This document shows positions 6,864-30,350 of a DNA stretch of 64,000 nt, piece by piece. This DNA is from Selaginella moellendorffii (Eukaryota > Plantae > Lycopodiophyta), in contig NW_003314283.1 of the NCBI RefSeq assembly GCF_000143415.4, positions 382,752-446,751 on the forward strand, given 5' to 3'. Below the pieces are notes generated by a model. That model made no database searches. It was not told where the DNA came from and worked only from the letters and a program-made list of their open reading frames with translations. Made by a program: the position numbers and the translations under genes. The number at the start of each line of letters is the position of its first letter. Position 1 is the stretch's first letter.

Positions 6864-6942
6864 TATCGGCCGTTCAAAAAGGTTGATTACAGTTTATAAA
6901 CACAGATCCTTTTCCTATCAATAGGGTTTACTGCCGGGAATC

Positions 6943-8192: not shown

Positions 8193-9194
8193 TCTTTGTC
8201 TTGAATTCGTAATTTCCTATTAAGCAATTTCTGGTTGTCAAGCTGAATTTCTAATGGAAAACTCTTCTTGCGTTGTGAAAAAAAATATCTCTCTCGTTTT
8301 TCTAGTTGGTTGGCATCAGTAAACGAGTTTCTTTGCAGATTGCAAGAGTCGAGTCTTGTTTCTTCTCAGGCATCATCCCCGATCCATAGGAAGTGCCTGC
8401 TTGCTCCCACAACTCACGTTGCCACTGCCAGTTCAGCACTCATGTGGGCAGCTGGAGTTGCACAAGTCTGGATGCTTTGCTGCAAGGTAGGAGGGATTTT
8501 GACCAATGTCATCAAGGTAAAGTATGGTAATTTAAATAATAATAAAGGTGTGGAAGCATTAGCAATGAGTTGTAGGATTTGACAATTATAAAACAACTAA
8601 GCAAAAGTTGCAAAATAATTGATTGAATTGGTAAAAATTAATTATCTGTAAACACTTGGTAGTGACCTAAGATTGATGCAAGGTTGCATTGTGTAACAAC
8701 AACACACTTGGGAGATTTCATAGTGCATGGCTCTAGAGCTGGATCTCACACTTTGCAATAGCAATGCAAAAGTTTCAATTCAAGTATTTTTTATGGCGTG
8801 CAATTCATAAAAGGGTGAGTGTTACTGTGGTAGATTTCACTCACAATACAGTGTCCATGTGGCAGTTTTTTATTGGTTCGGCATTAAATGTCATTTGGAT
8901 GCCTCATGGATGCCCCATGGATGCTGGCCGATGGGTCAATGATGTCCCCATAATATGAACAATGTGTTACACATAGATGCCACATATCATCAAGTTTGAC
9001 CCCATGACATGGGGATTCATCAAGTCATAGGGTTTAGGAGATGCTTCCTTGCCTTAGCGCCTTGCTTTAGTGCTCTGTTATTCGGCATATTTCTTGGTAG
9101 CAAATGTGGAAGGTAATTTGGTTTGCTAGTGAGTGGTTTGAAATGTTTTTGTGGGTAGTGTTGGAAGTGGCTTTGATTTACTACTTGATTGTTC

Positions 9195-10947
9195 TTTATG
9201 GACTTTCAAGTTCCTACCATGAATATAGTTCCCTCCCTAGTTTACTTCAAATTTGTGTCACTAAAACTTTTTCTTCCAGGTTTACTAGAAGACGTGGAGG
9301 AAGATGAAGTGGATGGCCTTCCATCCAATTTTAGTGATTCGAATTGTGGTTCCAGTATGGATAGTGACAACGATGCTCTCCCAAAGGTTTGTTTAGTTTC
9401 CAGCCTCCTAGATTCATGATTTGCACATTTCTAGGCCTTCTATAATTTTTTGCAATCAAGGGGATTCGGTAGTCCAGCTGCATTTGGCACTTGGATGCAC
9501 ATGAAGATCCTCGAGACTAAGACTACTATTTACCTCGCATGCTATCTTAGAATTTCCAAGCCAACATTGTACAAATACATGCAGCTTGTCGATCTAAATT
9601 GGAGAGGTGTATATTATAGAGTACCACCTGAAGAGGTACTTCATCACGTTCAAACTAACAATGCTATGAATCGAGGTGGCACAAACTGAGGGATTATCAA
9701 TTCTCGATCTAGTTGTCGAACTGGAGGATACCGATTTAGCCGACACCAAATTTGTGAGGCCTTAGCCACTCACGATCCAAGTAGGCTGGAACAGAGGCAC
9801 ATGACAAGGATTCGACGACGGATTTATAGGAATGAGGAGGCTTATGCACTTTGCTATATGGATTGTGAGTATTCTTTCATTTCTGTTTTTTTGTCAGCAC
9901 ATGTGGTAATATGTTTATTGTAGCATATTGCAAGTTTGTAAGCTATGGTTTCTATGTACATGCCATTATTTGCGGGGCAACTCATTATATTGTAGCTTGC
10001 AAGCTAGCTACCTCCAAAGAATCCCATACAATATTTAACATATATGCGTAGACTGTTCGTCGATTTGGAAGGCCCAAGCACATCCGGAGCGACAATGCTC
10101 CAGAGCACAATGAGGTTGAGAGGGACATGATCCGCTGTTGGGGTCCTGCAGCTAGGAGCTTCATACGTGGGATATCAACATGTAACCAGGTATTCACAGC
10201 GTTAGAGTTTTTCCAAATAAGGACTCATAAGACTAAATCAAATTTGTTTTACAGCGTATAGAGCATTTGTGGAGAGAGCTCTTTGAGCGCGTGGTGTGGT
10301 TTTATAAGCACCTTTTTGAGTCCATGGAAGATATAGGAATTCTCGATGTATCTAATCCATGGCACAACCAGAGTCTACGTTGTGTCTTTGCTCCGTACCT
10401 CAAGAAGGATATTTCACACTGAGTTGCAACCTCCATGAGGTCCGTCCGTATCGATGTGGTGATTACTTCAAACCATCTCATGTTCCTGCAAACTTATTTC
10501 AACCGATGGAACGAGAGCTTGGGTAACAATTTTGGTAATGTTATAGAATTCCTAATAAAATGTGCTTTTGTAGGATTATGCCGAGTGTTGGTGGAAAAGA
10601 TATTGAAAACCTTCCCGGACCATTTCTCTTTAATGTCGAAGGTGCAACTTTGTCAGAGGTAATCTTTAGAGCAAGAATACAATAATTTCTTTAAATCTAT
10701 TTTGTTGTGCTTGGCTACCTTACAGGCTCTTGGCACTGTTCGAAACCAGGCATTTTTGATGCATCGGGAGGGACTCAACTTAGACAAGCAATATCTACTT
10801 CATTTGGATCTAACAATGGAGTGTGCAATGGCTGATGTTGCGGGTGTAGATCTACCACTTTACATCGAGAGTGCCTTGCCTACAGCAACACCAGTGAAGC
10901 GACAAGCTTTGGAAAAATTATACTTGGCCATACTCGGAGAAAATTGA
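9195..10947 (+). pseudogene. Spliced IS3/rve-type DDE transposase with premature stops
   Basis: Hand-spliced exons give an HTH-like LRISKPTLYKYM, then HDP..RIRRRIY..ALCYMD (D at 9861), GFYVHAIICG, FGRPKHIRSDNAPEH (D at 10091) and SFIRGISTCNQ/RIEHLWRE (E at 10261). Stops at 9687, 10049 and 10420. The start is uncertain. Confidence 0.8.
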
Positions 10948-11212
10948 GTGTTCTTTAGTGTACATTTCAAATTAAAATTAAAATTCTGATTTGTTCAATT
11001 TTAGGGTTCCCACGTTTGGGATTAGGGTTTTCACCAAGTCCCACCCATATTAATTGTGCCTTCAACACGGGGCGATTTCATTTTATGACATGATTTTGTC
11101 AATGGTTCATTCGTTCTTCCAATCGATTTGTGTCATCTAACCGGAGGCAAGGCTTCTAGTGCACACTCCCCCGATCACAAGATCACCGCCCAAGCGAGAG
11201 CGCCACAGCTGT

Positions 11213-14200
11213 GATGGTGGGTAACTTCTCCTCGATCAGGTTTGCATAACTAATCCTTTGTGGTTTCTAGGCTAGAAGCAAGAATGCCGCACGCCTCAAC
11301 AGCAGTAGACACTATGCAGGAAACACCTCGCGAGCACGCAGCCAAGCACTCGATGTTCCGCAATTGGTACAGCCAACAGTCCCGTGAGACACACGCCAGC
11401 CACTTGATTTTCTAAGCTCCACAGCAGGGACATCAACTCCAACAGCATCCCATCCACAGCTCCTGACTGCATTTGAGCAAGCAGAGCGCCGCCTAACATT
11501 GCATACATTGCAACATATGCAGAACCTCCAGCATGTTTCATTCTCCTCGCCTTCCTTGGAAAGTAGCAGCCCGCGCATTCGAAATGAGCAAGTCCGGACA
11601 CCTCATGCCCACGGTGTTGTCCAATCTGGAATGCTGCCACCAACACTAACTACAGGACGTGCTCACGGAATCCCATATAGTGCCACTGCTACCAGCCCCG
11701 CAACTCCACCAACCACTACAACTCTTGCAACTCCATCTACCAGTACAAGTGCCAATACCTGGCCATCTACCTCCCGAAGCAACAAGCTGTCTAGCTCGGT
11801 AAGTTTTTCATTTGTACCCGTGTTTTTTTCCATGTGTTTTTCTGCGTAGGGTGAGTTGACAATGCCGCCACACCAGCGAGCTTATAGTTCCCCATCAGCA
11901 TTCCACAACTACTCCCAAGGATCGACATCATCATTTAGTGGAGCTTCGACATCCAGATATGTTCAAGCTGACCCTCAAGGCGGGCTGCCATGTGAGCCAC
12001 AGGTATAACATGACCCCATGCACTCTTCATTTTTTTCTTCTTTGGATTTGTTTAACTCATTTTTGTTTCACTGTGCTAGACTCTCTCACTGCTTGTGGCT
12101 GCAGTGCACACCTATGCCGATAACAATCGGCAGTCCTTATCTTGTCGTCGTGGACGTCGTGGCAGTCGATCCAAAGTCATTTGTGGGATGTTGTCTACGA
12201 CACCCTTGGTCCCCCGGCCATTCACCACAGTTCTTGTCACCAAGTGGATTGCAATCCCAAAGACTTGGCATGTACACTTATATGGGCGGAAAAGAGAGCC
12301 ATCTGTGAAGGTGACGGAACTTGACGAGTTGGCAGTGGACCTCCCAGAGTGTCTCATATGGGGTGGCTTATACTCCAATATTCTTTTCCAGCCCAGCACA
12401 GCCCAACATGCGTTTCTACTATCACTCCAAGCCTCAGGAATCCAACCTTCATCCATGACCAACCCAGGAGCATTTGTCCAGCGTGCAAGGCAGTTCAATG
12501 GTGGTGAGGCCCATACCGAGTCTGCAAAATTTGGCCTCAGCTCTATCCGGCCTTGCTACTGGCCTCCTCAAACATCATGGGGAGCTATAGCAAACAAGGC
12601 CAATGGCAATCAGGCAACAGTAATATATTTATACAATGTTATGGAGCATCTTACTAACAAACATTGGCTAAGTTATCAAAAGCAGGCCTGAGCACTCGAG
12701 GAGAAGGATGTTTGTGAACGTAAGTCATTTTTTTTTAAGTTCCCTCCTCACAAATATATGTTGTGGTCTTTGCAGTTGTAGCTATTACAAATACCTTGAC
12801 TGCAAATGATGATCCAAAGCCAGCCACGTAGGAACCAAACCCTTACGAGAATAATGAAGAAGAAGACTCTGCGGATGAAGAGGACATTCTTCCATTACCA
12901 GAAGAAACTCTCCCCATACAAGACAACATGGACATTAGTGGAGTCAAAGAACAAAGTGATGGTGGGGATGAACCGCACCAAGGATCTCCGGAGACATCCT
13001 TGTCACCAGAGATAGTGGCTCCAGGCCATGCGGCTGGTAAAAAGCATTAACATAAATGAATATTTTCTTCATTTTCTAATTTCTGAGTGCAGATAGGCCA
13101 ATGGTAGTGTATGACAGTGATGGCAGAGGCCTTGAAGACCATGGTGTGCCTCCACCCCCCTTTCTAGAGGGAAGTAGCTCCACTCCATTTACTCTTATGG
13201 AGTTGCTTGACAACTTTTTTACAGTAGAGTAAGATAATTGAAAATTGTGCCATTCAAAATTGAACTAATGTTTGCATGTAGATTGTTGGAGCGTCAACAA
13301 AGATGGATTGATGCCACCAATGCATTTAATGAAGCTATTCAGTTAACCACTTAGGATAGTGCCAACTTCATCATGCTGCAGATTGAGGAGGTTTCTACCT
13401 TACAGGATGCCACCACAACCCTTGAGGTGAGGGCACAGGGGGATGCTAAAGTTCTCTCATAGGTGCAGTGGCTGAAACACAAGCTTCTTGGTTGCTTTGG
13501 CGTGGAAAGCACAAGTGACGAGGAGATGCTAGACACTATTGCTAGACACCCTGAATTCCATTGGGTTGGCGATGAAATATTTTTGCGGCGCGTGCTTTTC
13601 AACCAAACCATGCCTCATTGGCAAGATTGGGAGAGTCTTCTCCTTAAGTTTGGCCTTTCAGAAGCACAGTACAAGGATGTGTTTTGTGACAACACAATCC
13701 AACAGCTCCTTGCTGAAGTAAGTATTAATGTACCTCCTTCAATTCTTGAGTCCACAATAGCATGGTTCATTGAGAAGAGGTATGTGTATCTATTTCTTAG
13801 CACTTAGTACTATCTTATGGTTTTGTGCAGGGACCTACATAGGAATTGGGCGGCTGCACAACAATTGAGAGAACTATTTGACACTACTAAAACACCGTAT
13901 TGTAAGTTCTCTCATTTTTGCATCGAGAAGGCCATGCTTCGGCCATACAGACTTGCTTGTACACGTTTGAGGCCATCTCGCATTCTAGTAAGCAATGAAT
14001 TGCCTATGAATTGGAGTTACCTCACTTGTCCTTCTAGATTGCACCAAACAATGAATTCAGTTGTTTCCAATTTGCCTTCAATACTAATCTCCGCACACCG
14101 AATTACAAAGTGGTCTATGCGTCTGAGATTGGAGGAGCTTTGGTGTGGGAGGAATCCACAATAGATGCGGGTGGGCCACATGCAAAAGCCATTAGGGAGG

Positions 14201-15343
14201 CTGTTCACCAGATTCCAGGATCAATAAGTTTAATTTTCACTTGGCTCACTAGAGTAACTTTGTGTTACAAACGCGTGGACTGTTTGTGCTTAGGGAAAGA
14301 GCCACATATTGGCATCCTAAGATGCCAGTGCATTTTAGGACATTGCAACAAGAAGAGCGGGATGTGGTAAGTTAAGTTTAAAGCACAAGTTTTATATACT
14401 CCTCATTTTTATATGCACAAGCTATCTTTGTGGGATGGTTGCTATTCCAAGCATTCGAATGTAATGCACAGGTTTCTCACAGATGTACAATTGCAACATT
14501 GGCAATTGCAACTAGAGAGGTTCCAAACGAGGATGACTGACGACTTGCCCGAGGAGGACTATATGAGATGGACCTCAAGGCATGCACACTGCATATCTGG
14601 AATGCACTCAACCAATTGCGAGGTGCATCAAGCCTAAAGGAGGAGGGCGATCGGCACAAGTCTGTGGATTCCATCCTAGAGAACCCTGCAATTACTGACT
14701 ACAATGCAGTGCTTGAGTCTAGACTCACTGAACTTGGTGAAGGTTATGAGGAGGCTGTGGAGGCATGCGTGGCTGCGGTGGTTTGGCATTACCTATTCAT
14801 TGAGCCAAATGTAGTGGGAGACTTACTCCGAGATGGCTTCCAACACTTAATGCGCATGGAAGCTCGTCAGAGGCCTCACAAGAGTCCAGCATTGCTAGGT
14901 GGGCTTTCACTCATTGGGACAGATGCTTTGTTACAGGTCTTCTGGGTAAGGACGATCATTCCTCACGCGGAGTTCATCAACTGCCTGATCTTTGATCAGG
15001 ACTTTGGAGAGAACTTCCGCAGCTGGATTGTGGACATCATTCGAGGTAACTATTTACTTTCACAAACAACTAAAACTCTTGTATGTTTGAACATTTTATA
15101 GATATAAGCCTGAAAGAGTTATCCAAGTTCCATCACTTTGTGGTTGATTCTTCAAAGTTCCGACTGGGAGAGCCTATTTGGATCCAAGTTGAGAGACAGA
15201 GTACATCATCTACTTGATTTCCCAGGTTCTCCACATGCACACGAGAAGTTTTCTTCCCTTTAACATACCTGTCAAAGGAGTGGACCAAACACAAGATCCA
15301 CCAGACACTCCAAAATCTAGAGAGCTTGTATGGATTGGGCTGA
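11213..15343 (+). pseudogene. Multi-exon cargo gene(s) ending in a HECT-like E3 ubiquitin ligase domain
   Basis: S/T/P-rich N-terminus. EESTIDAGGP at about 14150-14178. Last exon reads ELSKFHHFVVDSSKF...*FPRFSTCTREVFFPLTYLSKE...YGLG-stop, with Cys at 15236. Several internal stops; exon structure and start are uncertain. Confidence 0.62.
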
Positions 15344-15483
15344 TGTTGTGGAAGTAATGTAGACACTTTCACAATAAAAATAGATAATTGTCTTGAAATA
15401 TGTTTCACACTTTGAAAGAGACTCTTTCCAGTTCATTGGCGAAGTTAAAAGTAAGAATATTCAAAATATTCCACAAATGCCCA

Positions 15484-16074
15484 TTATAGGCACTTGCAGC
15501 CCTTGGTACCCTTTTGGCTTATGCTTGTCTCACCAAGCGTAATCACTATAGCTTCCAAAGCAGCTCCCAATTTAGGTTCTGGGTCAAAACTATCAAGTTT
15601 GGGTGCTATATGATGCCCATCCTCACTTGAGGAACTTTCAACCTGTTTGGTAGAACCAAAATCACCCTCTGGGTCTGTGAACTCGTCCTTGCTTGCATCT
15701 CGAGCAGTAACATATCCCTCGCTGTCGCTTTCTTCAGCAGGACCTTTCCCCTCGGTGATTGGCACAAGATTAGAAGTAGTCTTGGGCTGCCTTGTCGGAG
15801 GGATTGTCGAGCCTTGAGAGGAGGAGGCATCATATAGAATCCTCGATCCTGTCCCCTGTTGGATCCATTGTTGTGCCTCAAAGAAGTCATAAAATCCTCT
15901 CCAGTTTGCCATGCCAGGAGGAAACCTAGAAACCTCAAACATTGCAAAAGGGTTAGACCATATAGGAAACTGTTACAAATCTACTCTTACCAAAATGAGC
16001 ACAAGCTTCCAATCTCTGAAAACTCCAATTCTTTGGCCACAGCGCACGGCATATATTGGATAGTTTTGCCCCAT
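15484..16074 (-). CDS. Cargo gene with an RNase H1 N-terminal (Cauli_VI, hybrid-binding) domain and an acidic disordered tail
   Basis: Splicing out a short intron (acceptor uncertain) gives MGQNYPIYAVRCGQRIGVFRDWKLVLIL/VSRFPPGMANWRGFYDFFEAQQWI, which matches the YAVxxGxxxGIYxxW...FxxxxEA pattern. Confidence 0.65.
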
Positions 16075-17734
16075 GCTTGGAAACCCTTTTTACAAATTTC
16101 AAAATTTGAAACAGTTATGATTGGAAAATATTGTAAGTGTCCATTGTCATTGCTCTTCTCACCTAAATGTTACTACATGCAATTGCAACTTCCATATTCT
16201 CAAATCTCCTTCAGCATGCTCCTCTTGAGAGAACTCCAGGTTCAATTTGAAACAATTATAATTGGAAAATGTTGAAAGTGTCTATTGTTATCCTGAATGT
16301 TACTACATGTAATTGCAACTTCCACATTCTCAAATCTCCTTTAGCATGCTCCTCTTGAGAGAACTCCAAGTCCAAACATCAACACTATGCACCTTTGCAT
16401 AGTACATAATTGAAGTATGAGCCCCACCAATTCATCGAATTGGTTAGACTTCAACCTAATTTTGAGTCATATGCAAATCTTCTAAGCATCATGGTACAAA
16501 ACTCAAGTGTTGAGAGAGCTACACTGGAAATCAATTGCAACGAAAGATAAACTCAATGGGATTAAAGACATGACTCCAAATAGTATATATCCATGGCTTT
16601 GCAATGGAGCTAGATGGAGTTCACTTACGTTTGCTATGAACACTATGTTAAAAGAGGCGTGCCTAGGTGTGACTCAATTTCCAACATTTTCCAGCTATGA
16701 GAGCCCAGGAGTTCTTCGCGTCCATGGTGAATGCACCTCAAGAATCACAGTGCAAGACGGAGGAAGCAAGAGGATTCAACGATTGCTTAGACGCTGTGGC
16801 GGGTAACAATGGGAGCATCGATGATTGCGAGCAGCACAGCAGCGGTCGGCAATGTGGGGAGGATACGGCGATGGCTGTCGATGACAATCAAGGCTGCCAC
16901 ACTCCCAAATTCTAGATGGAGTCCACTTACGCTTGCTATAACACTATGTTCAAAAAGGTGTGCCAAAAAAGGATAATTTAATTCTTTTGCCATGAGCGCC
17001 AAGAGCAAGATGTGAAAACATAGTGCTCTAGATAAGGTAGTATGGTATGCAATTTAGTCGATTGTCCATTTGGTTTGCAACATTAACAACTTGCTCGAAT
17101 GCATGGGATGAATGGGTCTATGGGCCAAGAATGGCTCCATTCCATACATAGCATGGGTCATTGCTATGGGCATGATGCCCCATCCGGGGCATAAGGATTG
17201 GATATTCGTAAAATATTCTATGCCTGTGTTTTTTTCACACTCATAATACACGTAGACCAATAACAGGCATACACGTGGTGTGAGTGAAATCCACCATTGT
17301 AAAATCCACCCTTTTATGAATTGCATGCCATATTTTTAAACTAACTTAATGCATTTAGAACTTTAACACTCACTCAAGAGATGGTGCAAATTGAACCTGT
17401 CAGGTTGCATGGCATATGAAAGGAATTATCCCTTTCCATTGAGGTAAGAATTGCCACTTAAATGCTAAAAACAAATGATAAGAAAGGAATTATCCTTGGT
17501 AAGAAGGCAACAAAGCTTGCTATGCTGGAGGTTGCACACTTGGGATGCTAAAAACATATGATAACTCTGTCCATCCATTGGTAGATTTTAAAATTATTTT
17601 AATTTGGACTTTATGTATGGCTTAGTATATAAGAGGTGCCTATACCACGTCTTTTAGTTACACGTGTACTTAAACACTAAAACTTAATTATCCTCACTCA
17701 CACTTTTAAATTAATTAATTGAGTAGAGCTATAG

Positions 17735-18691
17735 ATGGAAATGATTATATTACTAATTATTTCTTTTCCTTTATGCATTTTAGCACCACCACCATTTGGA
17801 TATATATTTCCTGATCAGCCTATGACGCTTTACTCCAGTGATCCTGATGCACTATCTAGAGATAATTTTAAAGCTATATTGAAGAATATAGATGAATATA
17901 TTGGCTCCCTGAAAGGAGAAAAAACTCTTCCAACAAAGAGTTACTCAAGAACGTTTTATATTACTGATAATGTATATTGTATTTTAACATTATGGATTCA
18001 TTTGCCACTGGGTTTAAATGCAAAAGAACCTACTTATACATTATGCAAGATAATCCCACTACAATATGGATATAATGGATATGAAGCTTATAATATTTTT
18101 CACAGGCTTCGGGATTATATTTCCACGAATGCAACCACTATAGGTAAAGACCAAAATAAAAGGTATTTTGGAGAATTTGAAGCTAATTTAAGAAATTTTG
18201 CTATGCAATATAATGTTTATGGTTCACATCCTCCAACATTTTATAATAATTTTATTATTGAAAAAATTTCTTATAATAATTATGATGGTTATTGTGATAT
18301 TTATAGATCATCTCTTANNNNNNNNNNNNNNNNNNNNNNNNNNNNNNNNNNNNNNNNNNNNNNNNNNNNNNNNNNNNNNNNNNNNNNNNNNNNNNNNNNN
18401 NNNNNNNNNNNNNNNNNNNNNNNNNNNNNNNNNNNNNNNNNNNNNNNNNNNNNNNNNNNNNNNNNNNNNNNNNNNNNNNNNNNNNNNNNNNNNNNNNNNN
18501 NNNNNNNNNNNNNNNNNNNNNNNNNNNNNNNNNNNNNNNNNNNNNNNNNNNNNNNNNNNNNNNNNNNNNNNNNNNNNNNNNNNNNNNNNNNNNNNNNNNN
18601 NNNNNNNNNNNNNNNNNNNNNNNNNNNNNNNNNNNNCTATCTTTATATTTATGATACAGAGAAAGGTGAAATTTTATGGTCAGCTCATTAA
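17735..18691 (+). CDS. Secreted AT-rich protein with a C-terminal bulb-type (B) lectin-like domain, copy A
   Basis: Hydrophobic signal peptide, no introns seen, and the frame is preserved across a 319-N gap. The domain is inferred from paralog B (SLVSPYTNYRLTM..CQL, CFAHLDRTGHL, LEVSDNGYLYIYD..LW). Confidence 0.62.
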   Translation: MEMIILLIISFPLCILAPPPFGYIFPDQPMTLYSSDPDALSRDNFKAILKNIDEYIGSLKGEKTLPTKSYSRTFYITDNVYCILTLWIHLPLGLNAKEPTYTLCKIIPLQYGYNGYEAYNIFHRLRDYISTNATTIGKDQNKRYFGEFEANLRNFAMQYNVYGSHPPTFYNNFIIEKISYNNYDGYCDIYRSSLXXXXXXXXXXXXXXXXXXXXXXXXXXXXXXXXXXXXXXXXXXXXXXXXXXXXXXXXXXXXXXXXXXXXXXXXXXXXXXXXXXXXXXXXXXXXXXXXXXXXXXXXXXXYLYIYDTEKGEILWSAH

Positions 18692-19106
18692 CTAATATTC
18701 TTAATAACTCTAACAAATAATAATGCTTACAATTAAAGTTAAGATTTTACTTCTGTAATGATTTGAACTAATTACAAAACATCCATTACTCGATTAATCA
18801 TACTTATTAACCAATAATTAATAAATATAAATAGAATATTGATAATACATATCCCCTAAAGTGTATATGTTGGCTTTAACTACTTTTTTCCTACCTAGAG
18901 AACTTGCAAGAGAAAATATTGCTCTCTTTTTACTGCCACTAGCAGAGAACTTCCGCATCGTCAATTCGTCAGGTCCTTCTCATGGACCCTATTCATAAAT
19001 GTTTCTGATAGAATCTGCTAGATTCCCTGCGTATATAATATTTCTTTGTCGTAAAAATGGAATGAAAACACGCATCCAAAAGTCTTTCTTTGCCACGATT
19101 TTCTAC

Positions 19107-19206
19107 CTTATATATATGAGCAAGTGATTCGGATTGAAACCAATTTGACAACTACCAAAATCCCACTATGGTAATATTAGTATATGGCATCGTAGCCATA
19201 CACCTT
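19107..19206 (-). mobile_element. LTR remnant of the 49465-54446 gypsy family
   Basis: Reverse complement matches the first part of the 174-bp LTR. It has the same flank (ACAAGATTAATTTAATT) as the LTR ending at 6702. Confidence 0.7.
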
Positions 19207-19325
19207 AAACACAAGATTAATTTAATTTCTTATCTTAAAATATCTTAAAATATCTAAATATATTTTAAGTAACCCATACAGGTTTGCTTAACCAAACTAA
19301 AACAAAGAATAAAAGGGAAATTAAT

Positions 19326-19398
19326 TTCCATTGACGGGATTTGAACCCGAGTCGCCTGGGTGAAAGCCAGGTATCCTGACTGGACTAGAGCAATTGGA
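19326..19398 (-). pseudogene. tRNA-Glu(TTC) pseudogene
   Basis: Anticodon arm is intact. The acceptor and T stems carry mismatches relative to 22266-22339. Confidence 0.75.
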
Positions 19399-19647
19399 TT
19401 TTTCACAGTCCCAGCGAAAGGCCTGGTGTACACCACCTTTACCATGGACTTGATGGATCGAGGGACGCTGGCGGCCTCGGGTGTGGCAATGGCTCCATCG
19501 TTTACTTACATTGTGAGTGGTGGCACTGGCGAGTTCCTTGGAACCTTTGGCAAGATGGAAGTTTTCATTGTTAGCAGTGTTGACGATGGAGCCAACTTTA
19601 TTCTCCTTCACGATGTCACGCTCTATTCTTCCACTAGCATGAATTAG
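19386..19647 (+). pseudogene. C-terminal fragment of a dirigent-like protein
   Basis: RAIGFF...GTLAASG...YIVSGGTGEFLGTFG resembles the dirigent VVGGTGxF motif. No N-terminus is present. Confidence 0.5.
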
Positions 19648-19684
19648 AATATGCTTTGATACTTCTAAAATTTAGGGATTGTGG

Positions 19685-22154
19685 ATGATGCTACTCCTGC
19701 TAGGCTTCGCGCTCGTCGAGGCGCTGAGCGCGCCGATTCCTAGGTTTGAGGAGCGCGCAGCTCTCAAGGAGGATGTCCGAAATATGTAAGATCTGTGATC
19801 TATCCTTCGTGTATTTACTGATTGGGAGCTCAATCGATCGCCAGGTTCCATCACGCCTACGACAACTACATGAAATACGCCTTCCCGGTACGCATTTCTC
19901 TTTCCTGACGAAGGAAACTCACGAGATTTCGCTTTGTCTGTGGCAGCACGACGAGCTCAAGCCGCTCAGCTTGAGTTATACTGATTCGCTAGAGGAGCTT
20001 GGAAATCTTAAGGTAAAGTTTTCTCAAGTTCTCGCAGTTTTTCTTCCTTCTATCATTTTTTCTTTTCTTTTTCCTAGCTTGAGCGTCTCTCAGAGACTTA
20101 CAGTGGATCGGCTTTGACACTCGTGGAATCCTTGTCAAGGTAATAGTGTTCTTGGATGGATTTCCATTTCTTCTTTATCTTTTCTTCTTATATACACAAT
20201 GAAACATTCTCGTCAGCTTGGCAGTCATGAAGAACAGCAGCGAGTTTGAGAAGGGAGTTTTGTGGCTTGCCGAGAATTTATCCTTCGACGTTGATGTCCG
20301 AGTGAACGTTTTCGAGGTACGTTTGATACCATCGCAGAGCCAGATAACGTAAACTCTTTAACGGTGAAGTCTCGCTTCAGTGTAATATCAGGTTACTAGG
20401 GGGATTAATTTCTGCACACTTCCTAGCCAAAGATTCGAGAAAACAATTGATGTCAAATGGATACAATGATCAGTTGCTTATGCTTGCAGAGGACTTGGGA
20501 CTGCGATTGCTGCCAGCTTTTGACACGCCCACTGGAATTCCATACGCTTGGATCAATCTGAAGGTTTGCTACATTTTCTCAACGCTCACCTTTCATTTGG
20601 AAAGCTTTTTATAGACCGGAGTGCATCCAAACGAGACGACCGAGACAAGCACTTCCGGGTGTGGTAAGTAGCGAGTTTCGTTTCTTTCTTCGTTCTTTTC
20701 GTTGGTTTAAGTAAAAGTTTCATCTCTCAGGCTCGCTGGTTTTGGAGATGGGAGCGTTGTCCCGCTTAACTGGCAATCCACAGTTTGAGAATTTAGCTTT
20801 GAGAGCTCTTCGCAAACTGTGGAGTATGCGCAGTGAACTGAACTTACTGGGAACGAACCTTGACATAAATACTGGACGGTGGACTGAGTACTCTTCAGGC
20901 ATTGGTGCTGGTAATATTTTTCAATGTAATTATTTGGTCACCGTCCGGCCTGTTCTTTCTGCAGGCATCGATTCCTTCTATGAATATTTGGTAAAAGCCT
21001 ACATTCTTTTCGGAGGCGAAGAATACTGGGATATGTTTCAGGACGCTTACCGAGCTGTCCAACAACATTATAGATATGGTTCCTGGTAAACTATCAGTAA
21101 ACAGTTCATATGTATTGAAAGAGCTTTATATCAGGTATCATGACGCTGATATGAGAACTGGGAAAGCTACATACTGGCAGTTCACGAGTCTGCAAGCATT
21201 TTGGCCTGGACTACAGGTAGGAATTTATCGAGAGTTTTATGAAACGTTATGATCTTTTATTGCAGGTTTTGATAGGTGATATTGCCGCTGCAAACGCTAC
21301 CCACAGAGAATTTCTCCGCTTGTGGGAGATGTTTGGTATTTTTCCTGAAAGGTTTCGTTTTGTAGAGTTTTGATCCTGCTTTGCTTACTATCCTTATTAT
21401 CTTTTTTTTTTTGTCTCAGATACTTACTTGATGCCGGAAAAGTCCACCCCACAGAAAGATACTATCCACTTCGTCCAGAGTTGGCGGAGTCCACATTCTT
21501 TTTATACCAAGCTACAAAAGGTAAAATAGTAGAAAAAGTTTGGATTTGATTGTATGTTTTGCTTTTCAGATCCTTGGTATTTGGACGTGGGAAAGAAAAT
21601 CATGAACTCTATCAATGTGTTTAGCCGCGTGCCCGGAGGCTTTGCTAGCGTCAGAGATGTCATGACTATGAAACTAGAAGACCATCACCATAGTTTTTTC
21701 TTATCAGAGACGTAAGTACTCACACCTCCTGCGTGCTGATGATCACAAATCCTTTCAACAGGTGCAAATACTTGTATTTGCTATTTGATGACAGCTTCTT
21801 GGACGGCGAGAACCATGTTTTCTCCACCGAGGGCCATCTCTTCCCTGTCAACCAGTCGTGGCAGCAACAGCCCCGTCCCAAGGTACCAGAGGATCAATCT
21901 CGCGAAACATAAGTAGCGTTTGTGTGTTTTGACAGATATTGTCAAGGCTACGACTATTTTCAAGGCAAAAGCCGATAGACACCAGCGCTCTCACATCAAA
22001 GACATGTCCTCGCTTGAGCAGAGGAAGTGTGGAATCGGCATGCCACATCCCAGACACTCGCGCTGACCACCGATGCGTTTCAAGGTCGGACTGTGGCGTA
22101 GACGCGACTACTTGCGCGAAGAGGTCGTGTAGTTTTGCCGGTTATTGCTCGTGA
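19685..22154 (+). CDS. MNS5: GH47 ER alpha-mannosidase (EDEM-like), multi-exon
   Basis: Exons encode MFHHAYDNYMKYAFPHDELKPLS, DSLEELGNLKLE, VNVFECNIRLLGGLISAH, GIGAGIDSFYEYL, YPLRPELAEST and SFFLSET, with GT-AG introns. Confidence 0.88.
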
Positions 22155-22265
22155 CAAGATCACCAAAAAAAAGCATATAGAAATTATTTTTTCTTCCCCA
22201 GAAAAATAAGATGCATATATTGACAATCCCAGAAGAAGAAAAAAAAGGATAAAAGGGAAATTAAT

Positions 22266-22339
22266 TTCCATTGCCGGGATTTGAACCCGGGTCGCCTGGG
22301 TGAAAGCCAGGTATCCTGACCGGACTAGACGACAATGGA
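22266..22339 (-). tRNA. tRNA-Glu(TTC), intact
   Basis: Full cloverleaf: TCCATTG/CAATGGA acceptor stem, CTTTCAC anticodon loop, GGTTCAAATCC B-box, and downstream oligo-T. Confidence 0.93.
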
Positions 22340-22461
22340 TCAATGAAATTTTGGCAGTTCAAAAAGGTTGATTACAGTTTATAAACACAGATCCTTTTCC
22401 TATCAATAGGGTTTGTTATCAAAAACAATCAGTCCGAGAGAGAAAGAGACTGCCGCGAATC

Positions 22462-23772
22462 ATGTGGTCGCTAGAGCCCAGCTTCTTCGATGAGCATGGA
22501 GCGCTTGTAAGTGATCTTCCAGCGCTAGATCCAGAAGATGCAGCTGCATGGCTCTCCGCTTCCACCACTTTCTCGACATTGAGCATCACGGCATCGGTGA
22601 GGGGCGCTGTTTTGCGATCTGTGAATGCCGAACAGCGTTATAGGCAATTGCACAGGGTGGAAAAGGAAAACAAGTACCCTGGCTGGATGCTACTCAAAGT
22701 GGTGCTTGCGGAAGTGCATTATCTTTTGTTCGACAAAGCTGGGGCGCAGCAGCGGCTGCTGGATGTCCAAGATGCCATAGGGCGTGGTAAGGATGAGCAG
22801 CTGGACAGGGCCGTGCTGGAGCTTTCCAAGCTTATCCAGGAGGAGGACGATGGAGATGAAGATGACGAAGAGGCGGAGGTGGAAGAAGGCATGCAAGTCA
22901 CTTCCTATGTGCGACCTCAACCTTTCTCGTCTGTTCCGTGTTCGTGGAGTGCGGAGGAGATTCGGCACAAGTGGCAGACGAGAACAGAAGTTGATATTGC
23001 TGAGTTTGGCCGCTACGCAGCCATCACCACAAACGTCCTGGAAGGAGTGTTTTCGCTTGAGGGTCGCAGCTTGTCGCGGCTGGTCAAGCGTGGATTCGAC
23101 GTTGACTCGATCGAGGGTATTCCTGTCACCAGTTGCATCAAGAGGAAGGCCAAGAGGAAGGCCAAGAGGGAGGCCAAGAGGGAGGCCAAGATCGTGCAAA
23201 TCCTGGAGAACACACAGTCCTGCTTCGAATACCTCATGAAGAATTCTGCTGCTTTCAATGACTCGACGATCCAAGATGTACACAAGAGACTTATGGAGGA
23301 AAACAATCTCAACCACAAGGTTGACAATGGTCGGTTTTATGCTTGTCTCGTGCCTTGTGGCAGCTACCGCCGAGTTCCATGCTATACAACCAATGGCAAC
23401 TTGGAAACTCGATTTTGTCCTTGGAGGCAGATCCCTACGGAGATGCAGTGGTTCTTTGAAGAGGCTCGGCAAGCAATGTCCGACGACTCTGCTGATCCAT
23501 TCTTGGTGTCTGCCTGGCTACACATCGCGTTTCTCAGCATTCACCCCTTTGCTGATGGTAATGGTCGGGTGGGCCGAATGATTTCCTCTCTTCCACTTGT
23601 CAAGGCAGGGCTCCCCCCTGTTGTGGTATCTTTCGAGCAGAAGCGGAAGAAGAAGTACTTCGCTGCACTGATAGAAGCTCGTAAGTCGGGTGATCTAGTA
23701 CCGCTGGCTTCGTTTCTGAAGGAAGAGGTTGAGCTAGCGATCATTCACATCTCCAATTTGGATGATGCTTGA
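22462..23772 (+). CDS. Fic/Fido-domain protein (putative AMPylase), copy B, intact and intronless
   Basis: Canonical HPFADGNGRVGR motif, with an upstream TNVLEG matching the (S/T)xxxE(G/N) inhibitory motif. Confidence 0.92.
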   Translation: MWSLEPSFFDEHGALVSDLPALDPEDAAAWLSASTTFSTLSITASVRGAVLRSVNAEQRYRQLHRVEKENKYPGWMLLKVVLAEVHYLLFDKAGAQQRLLDVQDAIGRGKDEQLDRAVLELSKLIQEEDDGDEDDEEAEVEEGMQVTSYVRPQPFSSVPCSWSAEEIRHKWQTRTEVDIAEFGRYAAITTNVLEGVFSLEGRSLSRLVKRGFDVDSIEGIPVTSCIKRKAKRKAKREAKREAKIVQILENTQSCFEYLMKNSAAFNDSTIQDVHKRLMEENNLNHKVDNGRFYACLVPCGSYRRVPCYTTNGNLETRFCPWRQIPTEMQWFFEEARQAMSDDSADPFLVSAWLHIAFLSIHPFADGNGRVGRMISSLPLVKAGLPPVVVSFEQKRKKKYFAALIEARKSGDLVPLASFLKEEVELAIIHISNLDDA

Positions 23773-24534
23773 TCTTGTCTTGAATTCGTAATTTCCTATT
23801 AAGCAATTTCGATCTCTTTTTTCAAGACTAAGCTTTAATTTCCATTAGAAATTCAGCTCGACAACCAGAGTTGATTGGCATCAGTAAAAGAGTTTCTTTG
23901 CAAATTGCAAGAGTCGAGTCTTGTTTCTTCTCAGGGCATCATCCCCGATCCATAGGAAGCGCCTGCAACTCACGTTGCTAGGGTCCCTGCCAGTACAGTG
24001 CTCATGCGGGCAGCTGGAGCTGCACAGATCCAGACGCTTGCTGCAACGCGGGAGAGGTTCTGACGAAGGTCATCAAGGTTCTGTAAACACTTGGTAGTGA
24101 CCTGGGATTGATGCCAGGTTGCGTCGTGTAGCAGCAGCACACTTGGGAGATTTCACAGTGCATGGCTCTAGAGCTGGAACTCACACTTCGCAACACTCAC
24201 TCAAGAGCTGGTGCAAATTGAACCTGTTTATTTTATGATCAGGAGAGCAGGTTGCATGGTATATGAGAGGAATTATCCCTTTCCATTGAGGTAAGAATTG
24301 CCACTTAAATGCTAAAAACAAATGATAAGAAAGGAATTAAAAGGCAACAAAGTTTGCCATGCTAGAGGTTGCACAGTTGCACATATGATAACTCCGTCCA
24401 TCTATTGGTGGATTTTAAAATTATTTTAATTTGGACTTTATGTATGGTTTAGTAAGCATGTCTCTTCAACACGTGATGATCATCTACTTAAACAATAAAA
24501 ATTTATTATCCTTTTAGATTAATTAATTGAGTAG

Positions 24535-25480
24535 ATTATATTACTTATTATTTCTTTTCCATTATGCATTTTAGCACCACCACCATTTGAATATATATTT
24601 CCTGATCAGCCTATGACGCTTTACTCCAGTGATCCTGATGCACTATCTCGAGATAATTTTAAAGCTATATTGAAGAATATAGATGAATATATTGACTCCC
24701 TGAAAAGAGAAGAAACTCTTCCAACAAAAAGTTACTCAAGAACGTTTTATATTACTGATAATGTATATTGTATTTTAACATTATGGATTCATTTGCCACT
24801 GGGTTTTAATGCAAAAGAACCTACTTATACATTATGCAAGATAATCCCACTACAATATGGATATAATGGATATGAAGCTTATAATATTTTTCGCAGGCTT
24901 CGGGATTATATTTCCACGAATGCGTAAAGACCAAAATAAAAGGTATTTTGGAGAATTTGAAGCTAATTTTAGAAATTTTGCTATGCAATATGATATTTAT
25001 GGTTCACATCCTCCAACATTTTATAATAATTTTATTATTGAGAACAATACTTATCATAAACTTAATAATTATGATGGTTATTGTGATATTTATAGATCAT
25101 CTCTTATTGGTGGTGATATTAACAAACATGGATCTACCATATTAAATGGAAATAGCTTAGTCTCACCATACACAAATTATAGATTGACAATGAAAAATTG
25201 TCAATTATTCTTTTATCAAATTAAAAGTAAACAAACTATCTGGAAAAGTAAAGAGTTTAATTTATTGACTTCAAACAAAGACATTAATTCAGAAATCTTA
25301 AATGATTGTTTTGCACATCTAGACAGAACTGGCCATTTGACTATAGTAAATAATAACTTTGTAATATGGGAATTAATATCACAACATTCTAAATATCAAG
25401 CAGGATTAGAAGTATCAGATAATGGCTATCTTTATATTTATGATACAGAGAAAGGTGAAATTTTATGGTCAGTTCATTAA
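24535..25480 (+). pseudogene. B-lectin-like gene, copy B
   Basis: Paralog of 17735-18691. The start codon region is deleted and an 11-bp deletion near 24925 shifts the frame. Confidence 0.75.
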
Positions 25481-26372
25481 TTATATTCTTAAAATCTCTA
25501 ACAAATTGAAGTTAAGAGTTTGCTTCTGTAATGATTTGATTTTAGTATAATTAATATTCCTAAAATATCCATTACTCGATTAATCATACTTATTAACACA
25601 TAATTAAGAAATATAAATAGAAATATAATGTTTCATCCAGTGCTCAGTTTCTCGTGAAAACTCTTGAAGGAAATGGCTTGACAAAAGAAATCCTCGTCAC
25701 ACCCATGGAAATAATATTGACAATATATATCCCCTAAAAGTGTATATGTTCGCTTTAACTATTTTTTCCTACCTAGAGAACTTGCAAGAGAAAATGTTGC
25801 TCTCTTTTTACTGCCACTAGAATTGCTCAATTCGTCGGGTCCTTCCCATGGACCCTATTGTTTCTGATAGAATCTGCTAGATTCCCCGCGTATATAATAT
25901 TTCTTTGTCGTGAAAATGGGAGTAAACGCGCATCCAAAAGTCTTTCTTTGCCACGACTTCCTGCGTTCGATTATTTTGCTCTCGAGTCTTCACGGCTACG
26001 CGTCACAGAAATTGGACCAGCGACTGGTCAGTGACCACTGTTTACGCCCTTGATTTTCCTCGAAGGCGATTGTAGCGAAATATATTCTCGCTATGCCGCA
26101 GTGTTCCTTATCTAGGGCTAGATCAGCGAGCTGGATTCTCGCAGGAAAGATCGCGCGGCCGGCCAGGAATCGGCGCCGATGGAGGTGAGAATTCGAGGCG
26201 CCGGCAGGTTTTCACAAGATCGGCATCGAATTGCTACCTAGGGAAGAAGATCTCCAAGAATTCGCAAGGATTTTGCTAGATCGTGTCGAATTCCTGGTGG
26301 ATAGGTGAAATATCGCGCGGCAAGCTGAGGTAGAGCCGATAATCCATCGAATTCCAGCCGGATCTGGGAGCT

Positions 26373-27632
26373 ATGGCGCACGATAACGACTATGAAAGAT
26401 CTTCGCCGGCCGCCGTCAACACCAGGATCATGGTCGCGGCAGTGGTGGTGCTGTTCGTGGTCGTGCTCTTCATCCTCTTCTTGCACATCTACGCGCGCTG
26501 GTTCTGGCGTAGCGCCAGGCTCAGGGCTGCCGCGAGGGGCGGATCAGGCGGCCGGGCTTGGTCGCGGCGATTTGGCAGGCGGAGGAGAATGCGATTCACG
26601 GTCGAGCCCGGGATTGCCGCCAACGGCGTGGTGGTGCCGAGCAAGGGATTGGACAAGGAGGTGCTGGAATCGCTCCCCATCTTCTTCTACACGAAGAAAG
26701 ATGGAGAGGTGGTCAAAGAAGGCGACCGCGAAGAGGAGGAGGAGGAGGAGATCTTGGAGTGTGCCGTGTGCTTGTCCGAGTTTGAGGAGAACGAAGCTGG
26801 GCGGAGGCTACCAAAATGCGGCCATGTCTTCCACACCGAGTGCATCGATATGTGGTTCTCTTCCCACTCGACGTGCCCGCTGTGTAGAACCAGCGTGGGA
26901 TTGGAGGCTTCCAGCGATCGAGATCGAGACCTCGAGCGAGGCGAGGCCGCGGAAGCTATAGCGGTGGAGGGTGGAAGCAGCAACGGGTCTCAAGGCGAGC
27001 AGCTGCTACGAGAGGCTGCGGTATCGGGTCTGATCACTGGCACGAATGCTTCTCCAGCGGTTTCCAGCACAGGTGGTACTACTGCTATAGCAATTCAGAT
27101 CCTCCAGGACGAAGGAGCGATTCTACTCCAGGAGCAAAGCGGTCCTTCGTCAAGCTCGTCGGGATTGAAAGGTCAGTCATCTCAGCAGCAGCACTTTCCA
27201 GCCAGCGTTTTGTTCTGGGGGAATCGCTCGTATACAAACTCCAACAGTGCTACAGTTGGTTCTTCGTCGGCGGCGGCATCTCAACAACAACAAGAACAGC
27301 ACGAGACGGCGACGACGACTGTTGCTACTGCCGCGTCTTACACGCCATCGCCCAAGAAGCAGCGACGCGAGCTCATCATCGATGTCCCTCGTCGATCCGC
27401 CGCCAACTTCTCGTCGGCGTGCTCCTCGCAGTTGCCTTCGCCCAATTCGGCAGAAGGTGGGGGGCAAAGATCCCCGCTGGGAGCGCACCTCCGGAGCATC
27501 AAGAGACTCCTGAGCAGGGACTCGAGGCGCGACACTTCGCCATCTCCAGTCGGACGAGATTGCTGTGAATCATCGCAGTATCACTCGGCTTGTCACACGC
27601 CGGGATCCATCACCCCGACATCACAGTGCTGA
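26373..27632 (+). CDS. ATL-family RING-H2 E3 ubiquitin ligase
   Basis: N-terminal TM helix, basic region, GLD motif and CAVCLSEF...CGHVFHTECIDMWFSSHSTCPLCR. Intronless. Confidence 0.95.
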   Translation: MAHDNDYERSSPAAVNTRIMVAAVVVLFVVVLFILFLHIYARWFWRSARLRAAARGGSGGRAWSRRFGRRRRMRFTVEPGIAANGVVVPSKGLDKEVLESLPIFFYTKKDGEVVKEGDREEEEEEEILECAVCLSEFEENEAGRRLPKCGHVFHTECIDMWFSSHSTCPLCRTSVGLEASSDRDRDLERGEAAEAIAVEGGSSNGSQGEQLLREAAVSGLITGTNASPAVSSTGGTTAIAIQILQDEGAILLQEQSGPSSSSSGLKGQSSQQQHFPASVLFWGNRSYTNSNSATVGSSSAAASQQQQEQHETATTTVATAASYTPSPKKQRRELIIDVPRRSAANFSSACSSQLPSPNSAEGGGQRSPLGAHLRSIKRLLSRDSRRDTSPSPVGRDCCESSQYHSACHTPGSITPTSQC

Positions 27633-27902
27633 TTTTTAAAACTCTGGTGAGTTTTTTGTTTTTCTGTTTCAAGCAGATATTCTTAGGTGACGCGTTTCTC
27701 TTTCTTCTCTGTTATGAACAGTTAGCATACGGAAGTTTGCATCGATACGTTAACTGTAAACAAAACAGTGTCCTCGTAACCAGCGGTTCGTTGAACTACT
27801 TCATACAAATTGAGCGAAAAAGTTTTGGCTTTGCATTACAGGAACCAAGAATATGAGCGAAAGAGAGAAAAAAAAAAAAAAAAACAGAGAAATCCTGTGC
27901 GA

Positions 27903-29084
27903 CTAGAGACTGAACCTGCCGCTGAGGCTCTCGATCCACGAGGAAGACTGGAAGATGATGCTGTGCATCCGCGCCTCGTCCTCGCGGATCCGCCGCCGCT
28001 TGCTCCGCAGCTCCTCCTTCCGCCGCTGGAGCTCCTTGTTCACCTCCTGCAAGCTCACCTCGATGTACTGGAGAGACTTCTCCTCCTCCTCGAGGCTCAC
28101 TTGGCCGGGGCCGCCAACGATGGCACTGGGACAGGTCGGGGAGGCGCTCCGGAGCTGCTGGACCCGCTCGATGAGCGACGAGGAGGCGGTGGTGGCGGTG
28201 GCGGAGTTTGGAGGAGCGGCGTTCCCAGCGGCGGCGCCATTGATGGAGCAGCCGAGCTGGAAGTCGGAGAGTGGGAGGTTGCAAGCGCCGACGCTGGCAT
28301 ACGGTTTGAAGGGGCGGGTGGTGGCGGCGGTGGTGGTACCGGCGGCGGTAGCGGTGGCGGCGGCGGTGGGCGATACCGGGGCGCTGCTGCAGCTGTTGAT
28401 GACGAGCGGCGGCGAGTTTTGCTCGTCCGAGGTGAGCGTCCCGGAGTTGGGCGGCGAGGAGGTGGGCGAGAGCGTGGACGAGTGGGAGTGGCCGGCGGGC
28501 GAGCGTGGCGGCGGCGGCGGCGGCGCCACCGCGTTGACGATGGGGATGGTGAGCAGCGGCGTCGACTGCGTGCGCTTGCGCGAGATGCTGCGGATGGGCT
28601 TGGAGTAGCAGGGCGCGCAGAGCGGCGGCGAGGCGGAGGAGGAGGGCGAGTCGGGGCCGAAGTGCGGCGTGAAGCAGATGCAAAAGAGGCGATTGTCGCA
28701 CTTGGAGCTGAGCAGCGAGATGGCGAGCTTGAACGAGGCGCGGCCGGACACCATCCGCGTGGGGCGCTCCTGGGCGGGGAACTCCACGCCGTTGAAGGTG
28801 GTGAAGAGCGGCGGCTCCGCAAGGAAGGGCTTGTCGTCGCGCACCACGGGGGAGTGGTCGTGGGCGTAGGCCACCGACGCGACGATGGTCACGTCCTTGG
28901 TCACGTTGGCAGCCAGGTTGCCCGACTCGTCCAGGAGGTGGACGTTGAGCACGAACTTCCGGCGGCACGACGCCTTGCCCCCGAGCACGGTGAGGACGTC
29001 CGAGCTCTTGCCGATGCCCATGGCCTCGGACGCCACCGACGCGACCAGGCGGTAGGGCAGTGGAGAAGCTGCCGCCGCCACCAT
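27903..29084 (-). CDS. STATL/CudA-like core-domain protein lacking SH2, with a C-terminal coiled coil
   Basis: GVEFPAQERPTRMVSGRASFKLAISLLSSKCDNRLFCICF and PIRSISR resemble the central domain of plant SH2-domain proteins (recalled similarity). Confidence 0.7.
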   Translation of the reverse strand: MVAAAASPLPYRLVASVASEAMGIGKSSDVLTVLGGKASCRRKFVLNVHLLDESGNLAANVTKDVTIVASVAYAHDHSPVVRDDKPFLAEPPLFTTFNGVEFPAQERPTRMVSGRASFKLAISLLSSKCDNRLFCICFTPHFGPDSPSSSASPPLCAPCYSKPIRSISRKRTQSTPLLTIPIVNAVAPPPPPPRSPAGHSHSSTLSPTSSPPNSGTLTSDEQNSPPLVINSCSSAPVSPTAAATATAAGTTTAATTRPFKPYASVGACNLPLSDFQLGCSINGAAAGNAAPPNSATATTASSSLIERVQQLRSASPTCPSAIVGGPGQVSLEEEEKSLQYIEVSLQEVNKELQRRKEELRSKRRRIREDEARMHSIIFQSSSWIESLSGRFSL

Positions 29085-29529
29085 TTCTCTCTCTTTCTCT
29101 ACTCTCTCCTCTCTCCTCTTTTTCTCTCTCTTCTTCTCTCACTGTGAAACTTTAACCCTTCTACCGTTTGCTCACAACCCACACGGTTTACCGCAACCGC
29201 CAGTCTCCAGGCTAAACCGTAACTGTTCATGAACAGTTAGGGCTTCTATACAACATTATCTATAATGGTTAAAAGGAAGTCTAGGGCATGCTTAAAGGAA
29301 TGCACATAGATATCTTCTCTATCTAATTGCTAAGTTGGAGTCTTGAATGCTGAAAGAGGTCGGGCCTTGAAATGAAAGGTGGTCGCTTGGAAGGAGGGGC
29401 AGCAGCCACTTCTGCAGGCGGCAGAGAGTTCCCGAAGCAAAAGAGCAGCGTCTCCAGCGTTGAACTCGAAAGTTCTAGTGTTGAATCATCCAAATTGGAG
29501 ATGTGAATGATCGCTAGCTCAACTTCTTC

Positions 29530-30350
29530 CTTCAGAAACGAAGTCTATCAGTGAGTACTTCCGCTCCCACTCCAAAGATACCACGACAGGGGGGAGCCCT
29601 GCCTTGACAGGAAATCATTCCGCCCACCCGGGAGTGGCTGTTCAGCCTGTGCAACCTGTCAAGGAGAGCGTGGAGAGGAAAGTTGTGGCGACCAAGAAAC
29701 GGAAGGTCGTTGTCACGGGAATGGGGGTTGTGTCCTGCCTTGGACATGAGCCGGATGCTTTAAACGAGAATTTGCTCAGCGGCACGAGTGGAATAACAGA
29801 GATTGAGAAGTTCATAACTTTGAGATCACTATTGGGCCACTGCCTTCTCAATGCAGAGCAAGATACCCGCGCCTGCTTGAACACAAGAAATTATAAAAAA
29901 GAAGAAAATAAAAACGCATAAGCATAACAGGTTCTGTCATGTGATACGCATCGCAAGTCGAACTTCCGCCTAGAAACTCCGCATATATCTCAGCACCTCA
30001 CCTCTGCATTGTTTAGATTGTTCACACTCCTCGACTGCCCATCACAAACGCGTATTGCCCCTGCCAATCCATTGCATCCAACGGGGGCGAAGCTCTTGTT
30101 GGTTCGTTGTTGCGCTGAGACAATGCCCTGCAGGCAACAAATCCTCAGTATAATGGATGAAGTTGAGCAGTGAGTTCACGCAGCAACGGTGGACACATAG
30201 TGTCCAGAATGACATACCAATAGGGATGATGGCTGCATCAGATCCACCAGCGATGTGCAGTAAGGTTTTCTATGATTGTGTCAAAAATATTCTAACTCGA
30301 TCAACTCTCTCGCAATAGTTGCAGGCCGTCCCCATCCATCCCTGGTCAGA
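29530..30350. pseudogene. Scrambled 3-ketoacyl-ACP synthase II (KASII) pseudogene
   Basis: Plus strand: RKVVVTGMGVVSCLGHEPD...SGITEIEKF. Minus strand: GWMG..TAC, AGGSDAAIIPIG, ALSQRNNEPTRAS, AEIYAEFLGGSSTCDAYHMTEP and GAGILLCIEKA. Confidence 0.8.

Follow-up and report, generated by a model that had tools for sequence, protein, structure and literature searches.

The window analysed here is a stretch of 64,000 nucleotides from the genome of the lycophyte Selaginella moellendorffii. It contains two PPR-E genes, genes for ALMT and a RING-H2 protein, a GMC oxidoreductase fragment and a Ty3 retroelement, together with several copies of a Fic gene, one of which (copy B) is intact. The Fic copies and the features that accompany them are as follows:

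22462-23772, plus strand: Fic gene copy B, intact and intronless, 436 aa (open reading frame, Pfam Fic, AF2 model, dN/dS)
22380-22385, plus strand: TATAAA, a putative promoter element, 77 bp upstream of the copy B ATG
22266-22339, minus strand: tRNA-Glu(TTC) gene (ARAGORN), on the 5' edge of the duplicated unit and 122 bp before the start of the Fic gene
22239-25967, plus strand: duplicated unit B, comprising tRNA, Fic gene and an AT-rich ORF (self-BLAST, direct repeats)
6821-8758 plus 17365-19109: duplicated unit A, split by an 8.5-kb transposon at 8792-17332
6943-8189, plus strand: Fic copy A, a frameshifted duplicate (tblastn, DNA alignment)
29482-29609, minus strand: third Fic copy, a decayed, frameshifted C-terminal fragment of ~57 aa (tblastn)
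Other haplotype, copy A': the readable part, aa 72-436, is open and has both motifs
Other haplotype, copy B': reading frame open over aa 20-436, with a 70-bp AT-rich insertion after codon 18

An earlier note, made from the sequence alone, had described copy B as an intact, intronless Fic gene in a plant genome, and this description holds. The frame runs from ATG to stop through 436 codons with zero internal stops, and the probability of its remaining open at such length is ~8e-10 from base composition. The protein is colinear with full-length chytrid proteins and the alignment contains no gap that would suggest an intron, which supports the intronless reading. It matches Pfam Fic (PF02661) at 62.2 bits (E 8.5e-17, aa 266-377) against a cut-off of 24, and scores below the cut-offs of three NCBIfam models: XopAC/AvrAC type III effectors (NF041381; 39.9 bits, cut-off 450), SoFic (39.6 bits, cut-off 550) and Doc toxins (TIGR01550; 14.7 bits, cut-off 38.65). 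The GC content of copy B (52%) and its GC3 (58%) are near those of adjacent host genes, which fits long residence in the S. moellendorffii genome. The TATAAA upstream of the ATG is also kept in copy A and on the other haplotype, as judged from alignments, and may serve as the promoter of copy B; scans for bacterial promoters and terminators returned chance-level hits only. The copy B protein is absent from ~15 billion public protein sequences.

The RING-H2 protein of the window (26373-27632) shares a 90%-identity cluster with XP_024536425.1 of S. moellendorffii (exact look-up). The scaffold that carries the latter, GL377593.1, has the gene order of the window and flanks that are 96-98% identical, identifying it as the other haplotype. 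Plant genes thus flank the Fic gene on both haplotype scaffolds. GL377593.1 holds two Fic copies, one on each side of a spliced GH47 gene, and none of its gene models covers either of them. In the window, the spliced GH47 (alpha-mannosidase-type) gene lies at 19387-22234 between the Fic units; on the other haplotype its annotated protein has 551 aa.

Units A and B are 88-94% identical by self-BLAST, and the edges of the duplicated units are marked by two degenerate tRNA-Glu copies (19299-19389 and 6821-6863). Carriage of the unit by a transposon was considered and rejected: no terminal inverted or long direct repeats bound it, and the search for repeats found duplicates of the tRNA and the tail only. 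Copy A differs from copy B by a frameshifting 19-bp deletion between 7698 and 7699 and a 6-bp deletion, and tblastn recovers it in two parts, with frame 1 for aa 1-284 and frame 3 for aa 274-436. At the position of the third copy, the other haplotype retains a longer remnant (43% identity). Copy B' is the positional allele of copy B, and its insertion lies at 5889-5958 of the fetched GL377593.1 locus. A GTAAGT 11 nt upstream in the coding sequence, together with the terminal AG, could form an 81-nt in-frame intron; the insertion has either disrupted the gene or given it a new intron.

Downstream of each Fic copy in the duplicated unit is an unannotated AT-rich ORF (26-33% GC), found at 24613-25480 (plus strand) and 17735-18691 (plus strand) of the window and at 8193-9158 of the fetched GL377593.1 locus. 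It is intact on the other haplotype (321 aa, with a signal-peptide-like start), split beside copy B and interrupted by an N gap beside copy A. For a bulb-type lectin identity there was no Pfam or PDB match, and a weak Atlas lead only. Elsewhere in the window, the segment at 27796-29147 is GC-rich (59%), and each of its strands has a long ORF (445 and 448 aa) for which Pfam gave no match; the matching region of the other haplotype carries a minus-strand model with a DG1062_N match. The Ty3-type LTR retrotransposon (49872-54128) has long open frames for gag, protease, RT, RNase H and integrase.

Motifs and predicted structure of the copy B protein

The features that define the protein are the following:

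22531-22866, plus strand: N-terminal TPR-like helical domain, aa 24-135, then an acidic linker at aa 126-142 (models, structure search)
23029-23046, plus strand: inhibitory-helix motif TNVLEG, aa 190-195, with Glu194 (sequence, family alignment, model)
23139-23191, plus strand: 12-bp coding tandem repeat, KRKA/KREA, forming a basic stretch (TRF: 4.4 units, 97% matches)
23542-23577, plus strand: Fic catalytic motif HPFADGNGRVGR, aa 361-372, with His361 (sequence, family alignment, alignment to the FICD motif)

Both Fic motifs named by the earlier note, a perfect HPFxDGNGRxxR and an upstream inhibitory TNVLEG, stand up to comparison with relatives. The catalytic motif fits the pattern HxFx(D/E)GN(G/K)RxxR and is invariant in a family alignment of 17 members, as is the whole catalytic loop. 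TNVLEG matches (S/T)xxxE(G/N), and its Glu194 is likewise invariant in all 17; across these members, the catalytic and inhibitory motifs are invariant or nearly so. TNVLEG lies 166 residues before His361 and, in the AF2 model, ends a helix (176-193) ahead of the Fic core. As the earlier note had also stated, the protein has no evident transmembrane segment: neither such a segment nor a signal peptide was found in copy B, where the highest 19-residue Kyte-Doolittle mean is 1.46 and falls within the Fic core. The count of four 12-bp units in copy B and one in copy A agrees with TRF and with the DNA alignment of copy A, and unit number differs among the Fic copies (4, 3, 1 and 1). The model of copy B has low confidence at aa 220-228, directly before this repeat, whose basic residues resemble a possible nuclear-localisation signal.

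The AF2 model, built from 17 family members, has a pLDDT of 86.8 and a pTM of 0.87. Its residues 158-435 superpose on class II Fic structures with Z scores of 21-23 and rmsd of 3.0-3.9 A over 227-257 aligned residues; the entries matched include 3cuc and 7cb8, and the proteins matched include BT_2513, SoFic, human FICD, FIC-1 of C. elegans and the Fic protein of Mycobacterium marinum. Scores are far lower for Fic structures of classes I and III (Z ~12-13). The structural alignments with class II proteins start at aa 133-169 and so span the inhibitory helix. Beta strands at aa 283-296 of the model correspond to the Fic fold, in which a helical core is joined by a beta-hairpin flap. An Atlas structure search returned bacterial Fic clusters only and contributed no taxonomic information. 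Motif sequence and predicted structure (Z ~22 to FICD, SoFic and BT_2513) agree with the class II assignment first proposed from the letters, and together they support a predicted class II, self-inhibited Fic domain.

The N-terminus had been described as acidic, helical and unrecognised, and the first two terms are accurate. In the model, helices span residues 24-35, 46-68, 76-88, 92-106 and 112-140, and the N-terminal 142 residues modelled alone also form five helices (pLDDT 81.8). The third term gives way to a predicted TPR-like helical repeat: the best structure matches of this domain are almost all TPR domains, including that of FICD (Z 8.2), at Z scores of 8-10, a range reachable by chance for helical repeats. 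Pfam gave no match for the domain at E up to 10, and no TPR model. We call it TPR-like because the Z range is only suggestive and Pfam detects no TPR. The predicted layout, a TPR-like domain followed by an acidic linker, an inhibitory helix and a Fic core, resembles that of FICD without its membrane anchor.

Relatives among chytrids, plants and other eukaryotes

In a word-index search, the full-length relatives of copy B are proteins of Spizellomycetales (Thoreauomyces, Geranomyces and Powellomyces) and of the liverwort Calypogeia fissa, at 42-44% identity and 98-100% query coverage, with a more distant relative in Lentinus. The nearest bacterial Fic relatives align at 26-31% identity over just 54-61% of the protein. 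An exhaustive HMM search gave 299 cluster representatives with E<1e-30; many are full length (profile matches span positions 4-466), and most are unlabelled environmental sequences. Name look-ups added Fimicolochytrium, the Chytridiales strain JEL0842, Rhizophlyctis, a second Thoreauomyces paralogue and a second Calypogeia locus; the family occurs in all sampled Spizellomycetales genera, some of which have paralogues. A word-index search with the family alignment gave no further named members among the matches listed. The nearest ESM Atlas cluster has 78 members and consists of Basidiomycota Fido proteins, and by protein-language-model features FICD clusters rank just behind this fungal cluster. 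One full-length environmental member lies at 6496-7986 of a compact contig (JGI 3300048583) beside a MIOS gene that is 62% identical to the MIOS of Nitzschia inconspicua, which indicates that pennate diatoms carry the chytrid-type family. The family of copy B is therefore eukaryotic and patchy, with members in chytrids, Basidiomycota, diatoms, other protists and two plants.

The second plant gene is that of Calypogeia fissa. It lies on a 46.8-Mb scaffold (CBCUJL010000002.1) between intron-rich aldehyde dehydrogenase genes, and the size of the scaffold and the nature of these neighbours identify it as a plant gene. Its frame is broken by a 17-bp tandem duplication, which the public model CAM6084453.1 bypasses by means of an 89-bp GT-AG intron (10287-10375 of the fetched locus), losing ~28 conserved residues of the N-terminal domain. 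The gene is either a pseudogene patched by annotation or a case of an intronised stretch. The second Calypogeia locus holds a C-terminal fragment only. Besides Selaginella, one plant with the gene can thus be named, this liverwort; no other named plant relative was found among ~15 billion proteins, in protein databases that miss the Selaginella gene too. In the word-index and HMM searches there was no close Selaginella or fern protein, all matches being at or below 51% identity.

Origin and persistence of the gene in plants

Phylogenetic placement was examined with a quick tree of 96 sequences, followed by a careful maximum-likelihood (ML) tree of 37. In the latter, the Selaginella and Calypogeia sequences form a pair (support 96/92) that is sister to Spizellomycetales (98/98), and the diatom, other environmental and Chytridiales clades fall outside this group. 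The backbone is poorly resolved (80/80, with open forks). A tree that keeps the chytrids monophyletic and the plants apart from them is not rejected by an AU test (p 0.082), so the plants stand robustly beside the chytrids and are not demonstrably nested among them, and the direction of any transfer is not proven. Sharing of the Fic gene between chytrid fungi and early-diverging land plants is well supported. The possibility of horizontal acquisition raised by the earlier note is strengthened by these results, the nearest full-length relatives being chytrids and one liverwort. The presence of the gene in a second plant means that the transfer, if single, is old. The simplest reading is that a chytrid lineage and an early land plant exchanged the gene once, long ago, and that it was then widely lost; a fungal donor is favoured by the distribution of the family, and two independent transfers between chytrids and plants are possible.

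Vertical descent of an ancient eukaryotic gene that most lineages have lost offers another account, under which the grouping of plants with chytrids would reflect sparse sampling, hidden paralogy or long branches. The family does span eukaryotes that are very far apart (fungi, diatoms, MMETSP protists and plants), the gene is common to two plant lineages whose split dates back more than 450 Myr, and both the poorly resolved backbone and the AU result are compatible with such a history. We nevertheless consider it unlikely: the node that unites plants and Spizellomycetales excludes diatoms, Chytridiales and Basidiomycota, no green alga or other plant was identified among the 299 representatives (E<1e-30), most of which are unlabelled, and dozens of independent losses in plants would be required.

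A different question is whether copy B is maintained or is open merely for lack of time. Pairwise dN/dS among the three open copies (copy B of the window and the two of the other haplotype) is 0.22-0.32, well under 1 in all three comparisons, and silent changes are in excess (Fisher p 9e-5, 1.5e-3 and 6e-3), which points to selection on the Fic coding sequence since the copies diverged. These values make it quite improbable that copy B is a recently inactivated or dying relic with no present function, as might be supposed from the frameshift in copy A, the fragmentary third copy, the insertion in the other-haplotype allele, the damaged Calypogeia copies and the lack of any public annotation. 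Moreover, the catalytic and regulatory residues have all been retained over the long divergence from Calypogeia and chytrids, and each haplotype has at least one copy that is undamaged where read (copy B in the window and, over aa 72-436, copy A'). Copy B is thus a genuine, unannotated nuclear gene of S. moellendorffii that is constrained by selection. At the level of the family, damage or incompleteness affects three of the four copies at the locus as well as both loci of Calypogeia, and the family could be dying out in plants.

Transfer in the reverse direction, with an early land plant as donor and the Spizellomycetales ancestor as recipient, would agree with the position of the plants as sister to Spizellomycetales and not within them, and contact with plants is plausible for these fungi of soil and plant debris. 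The distant clades of the tree, however, hold other fungi (Chytridiales JEL0842, Rhizophlyctis and Basidiomycota) and no other plants, and all sampled Spizellomycetales genera have the gene while just two plants are known to have it, which renders this direction very unlikely. Fungal contamination or an assembly artefact, suggested by the fungal best matches and the absence of introns, is ruled out by the plant context on both haplotypes, in which the gene lies amid spliced GH47, tRNA-Glu, RING-H2 and PPR genes whose order is kept on two independently assembled scaffolds, unit A is split by a plant transposon, GC3 is host-like and the highest identity to any fungus is just 44%.

The reading that we prefer, with a probability of roughly 0.6, is that S. 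moellendorffii has a gene under selection for a soluble protein with a TPR-like domain and a class II Fic domain, which derives from an old transfer between chytrids and plants and has since undergone duplication and partial decay. A more specific version, in which the first land plants received a soluble, FICD-like AMPylase/de-AMPylase from a Spizellomycetales-like chytrid by ancient transfer and selection still maintains it in Selaginella, can be put forward as a tentative idea.

Proposed mechanism and comparison with known Fic systems

In class II Fic enzymes, the inhibitory glutamate blocks productive ATP binding, and in FICD it also supports de-AMPylation. In this class it touches the second arginine of the Fic motif and obstructs the site of the ATP gamma-phosphate. 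By analogy, we propose that the Selaginella protein would be a soluble Fic enzyme whose resting form is a weak AMP-transferase. Having neither a signal peptide nor an anchor, it should be cytosolic, or may be nuclear. The inhibitory helix is predicted to position Glu194 above the ATP site of the loop that contains the catalytic His361. The TPR-like domain would probably bind a target, and a partner held in this way could be the substrate of a regulated AMP-transferase/de-AMPylase: as with FICD and SoFic, the enzyme might be switched on, or reversed to act as a de-AMPylase, on Ser, Thr or Tyr residues of the target protein. What the analysis shows directly is the structure of the gene, its motifs, the predicted fold, the selection and the phylogenetic position; the activity, target and localisation given here for the copy B protein are inferred. 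On the preferred reading, an early land plant and a Spizellomycetales-like chytrid would have been the partners in the old transfer from which the plant branch arose, and tandem duplication and partial decay would then have followed at the Selaginella locus.

In reviews of AMPylation, Fic proteins have been said to be absent from plants and fungi (PMC12409994, PMC4854385). This statement is wrong, as the Selaginella gene shows together with its chytrid, Basidiomycota, diatom and liverwort relatives. A literature search found no report or experimental study of the chytrid-type Fic family in fungi or plants. The Selaginella Fic adds a plant member to a known kind of enzyme, within an uncharacterised eukaryotic subfamily, and it points to a family, so far unstudied, of soluble Fic enzymes in eukaryotes whose layout is FICD-like. 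It is also a candidate endogenous plant AMPylation enzyme that genome annotation has missed. If a selected gene of chytrid origin is indeed what the locus holds, at least some plants would own a switch based on Fic AMPylation, which might act on chaperones of the cytosol or nucleus.

The closest known counterparts are the 'Fido domain-containing proteins' of Spizellomycetales (Thoreauomyces, Geranomyces, Powellomyces and Fimicolochytrium) and CAM6084453.1 of Calypogeia, which are colinear with the Selaginella protein over their full length at 42-44% identity. They share with it the N-terminal helical domain, the acidic linker, a TNVLEG-type motif, a basic patch and the Fic motif. The Selaginella protein differs in lacking the Ser/Pro-rich C-terminal tail of ~30-40 aa found in the chytrid proteins, and its KRKA/KREA repeat is expanded relative to the chytrid and Calypogeia relatives.

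Animal FICD/HYPE proteins, including human FICD and C. elegans FIC-1, are class II enzymes that, like the Selaginella protein, have an inhibitory glutamate; a helical repeat lies ahead of the Fic domain in FICD, and the predicted TPR-like domain of the Selaginella protein may correspond to it. FICD, however, is a type II ER membrane protein with a transmembrane anchor, whereas the Selaginella protein has neither an anchor nor ER targeting. The similarity to FICD is confined to the Fic core (~20% identity, profile positions 326-434), and the bacterial protein BT_2513 (3cuc) outscores FICD against the family profile. Orthology with FICD was rejected on these grounds and because the closest relatives are chytrid proteins; the shared FICD-like layout may be convergent. 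Bacterial class II Fic proteins such as BT_2513 (3cuc), SoFic (3eqx) and Dde_2494 (4rgl) have the same fold, position of the inhibitory helix and catalytic motif as the Selaginella protein, but they lack a TPR-like N-terminal domain, and many carry C-terminal wHTH or other domains.
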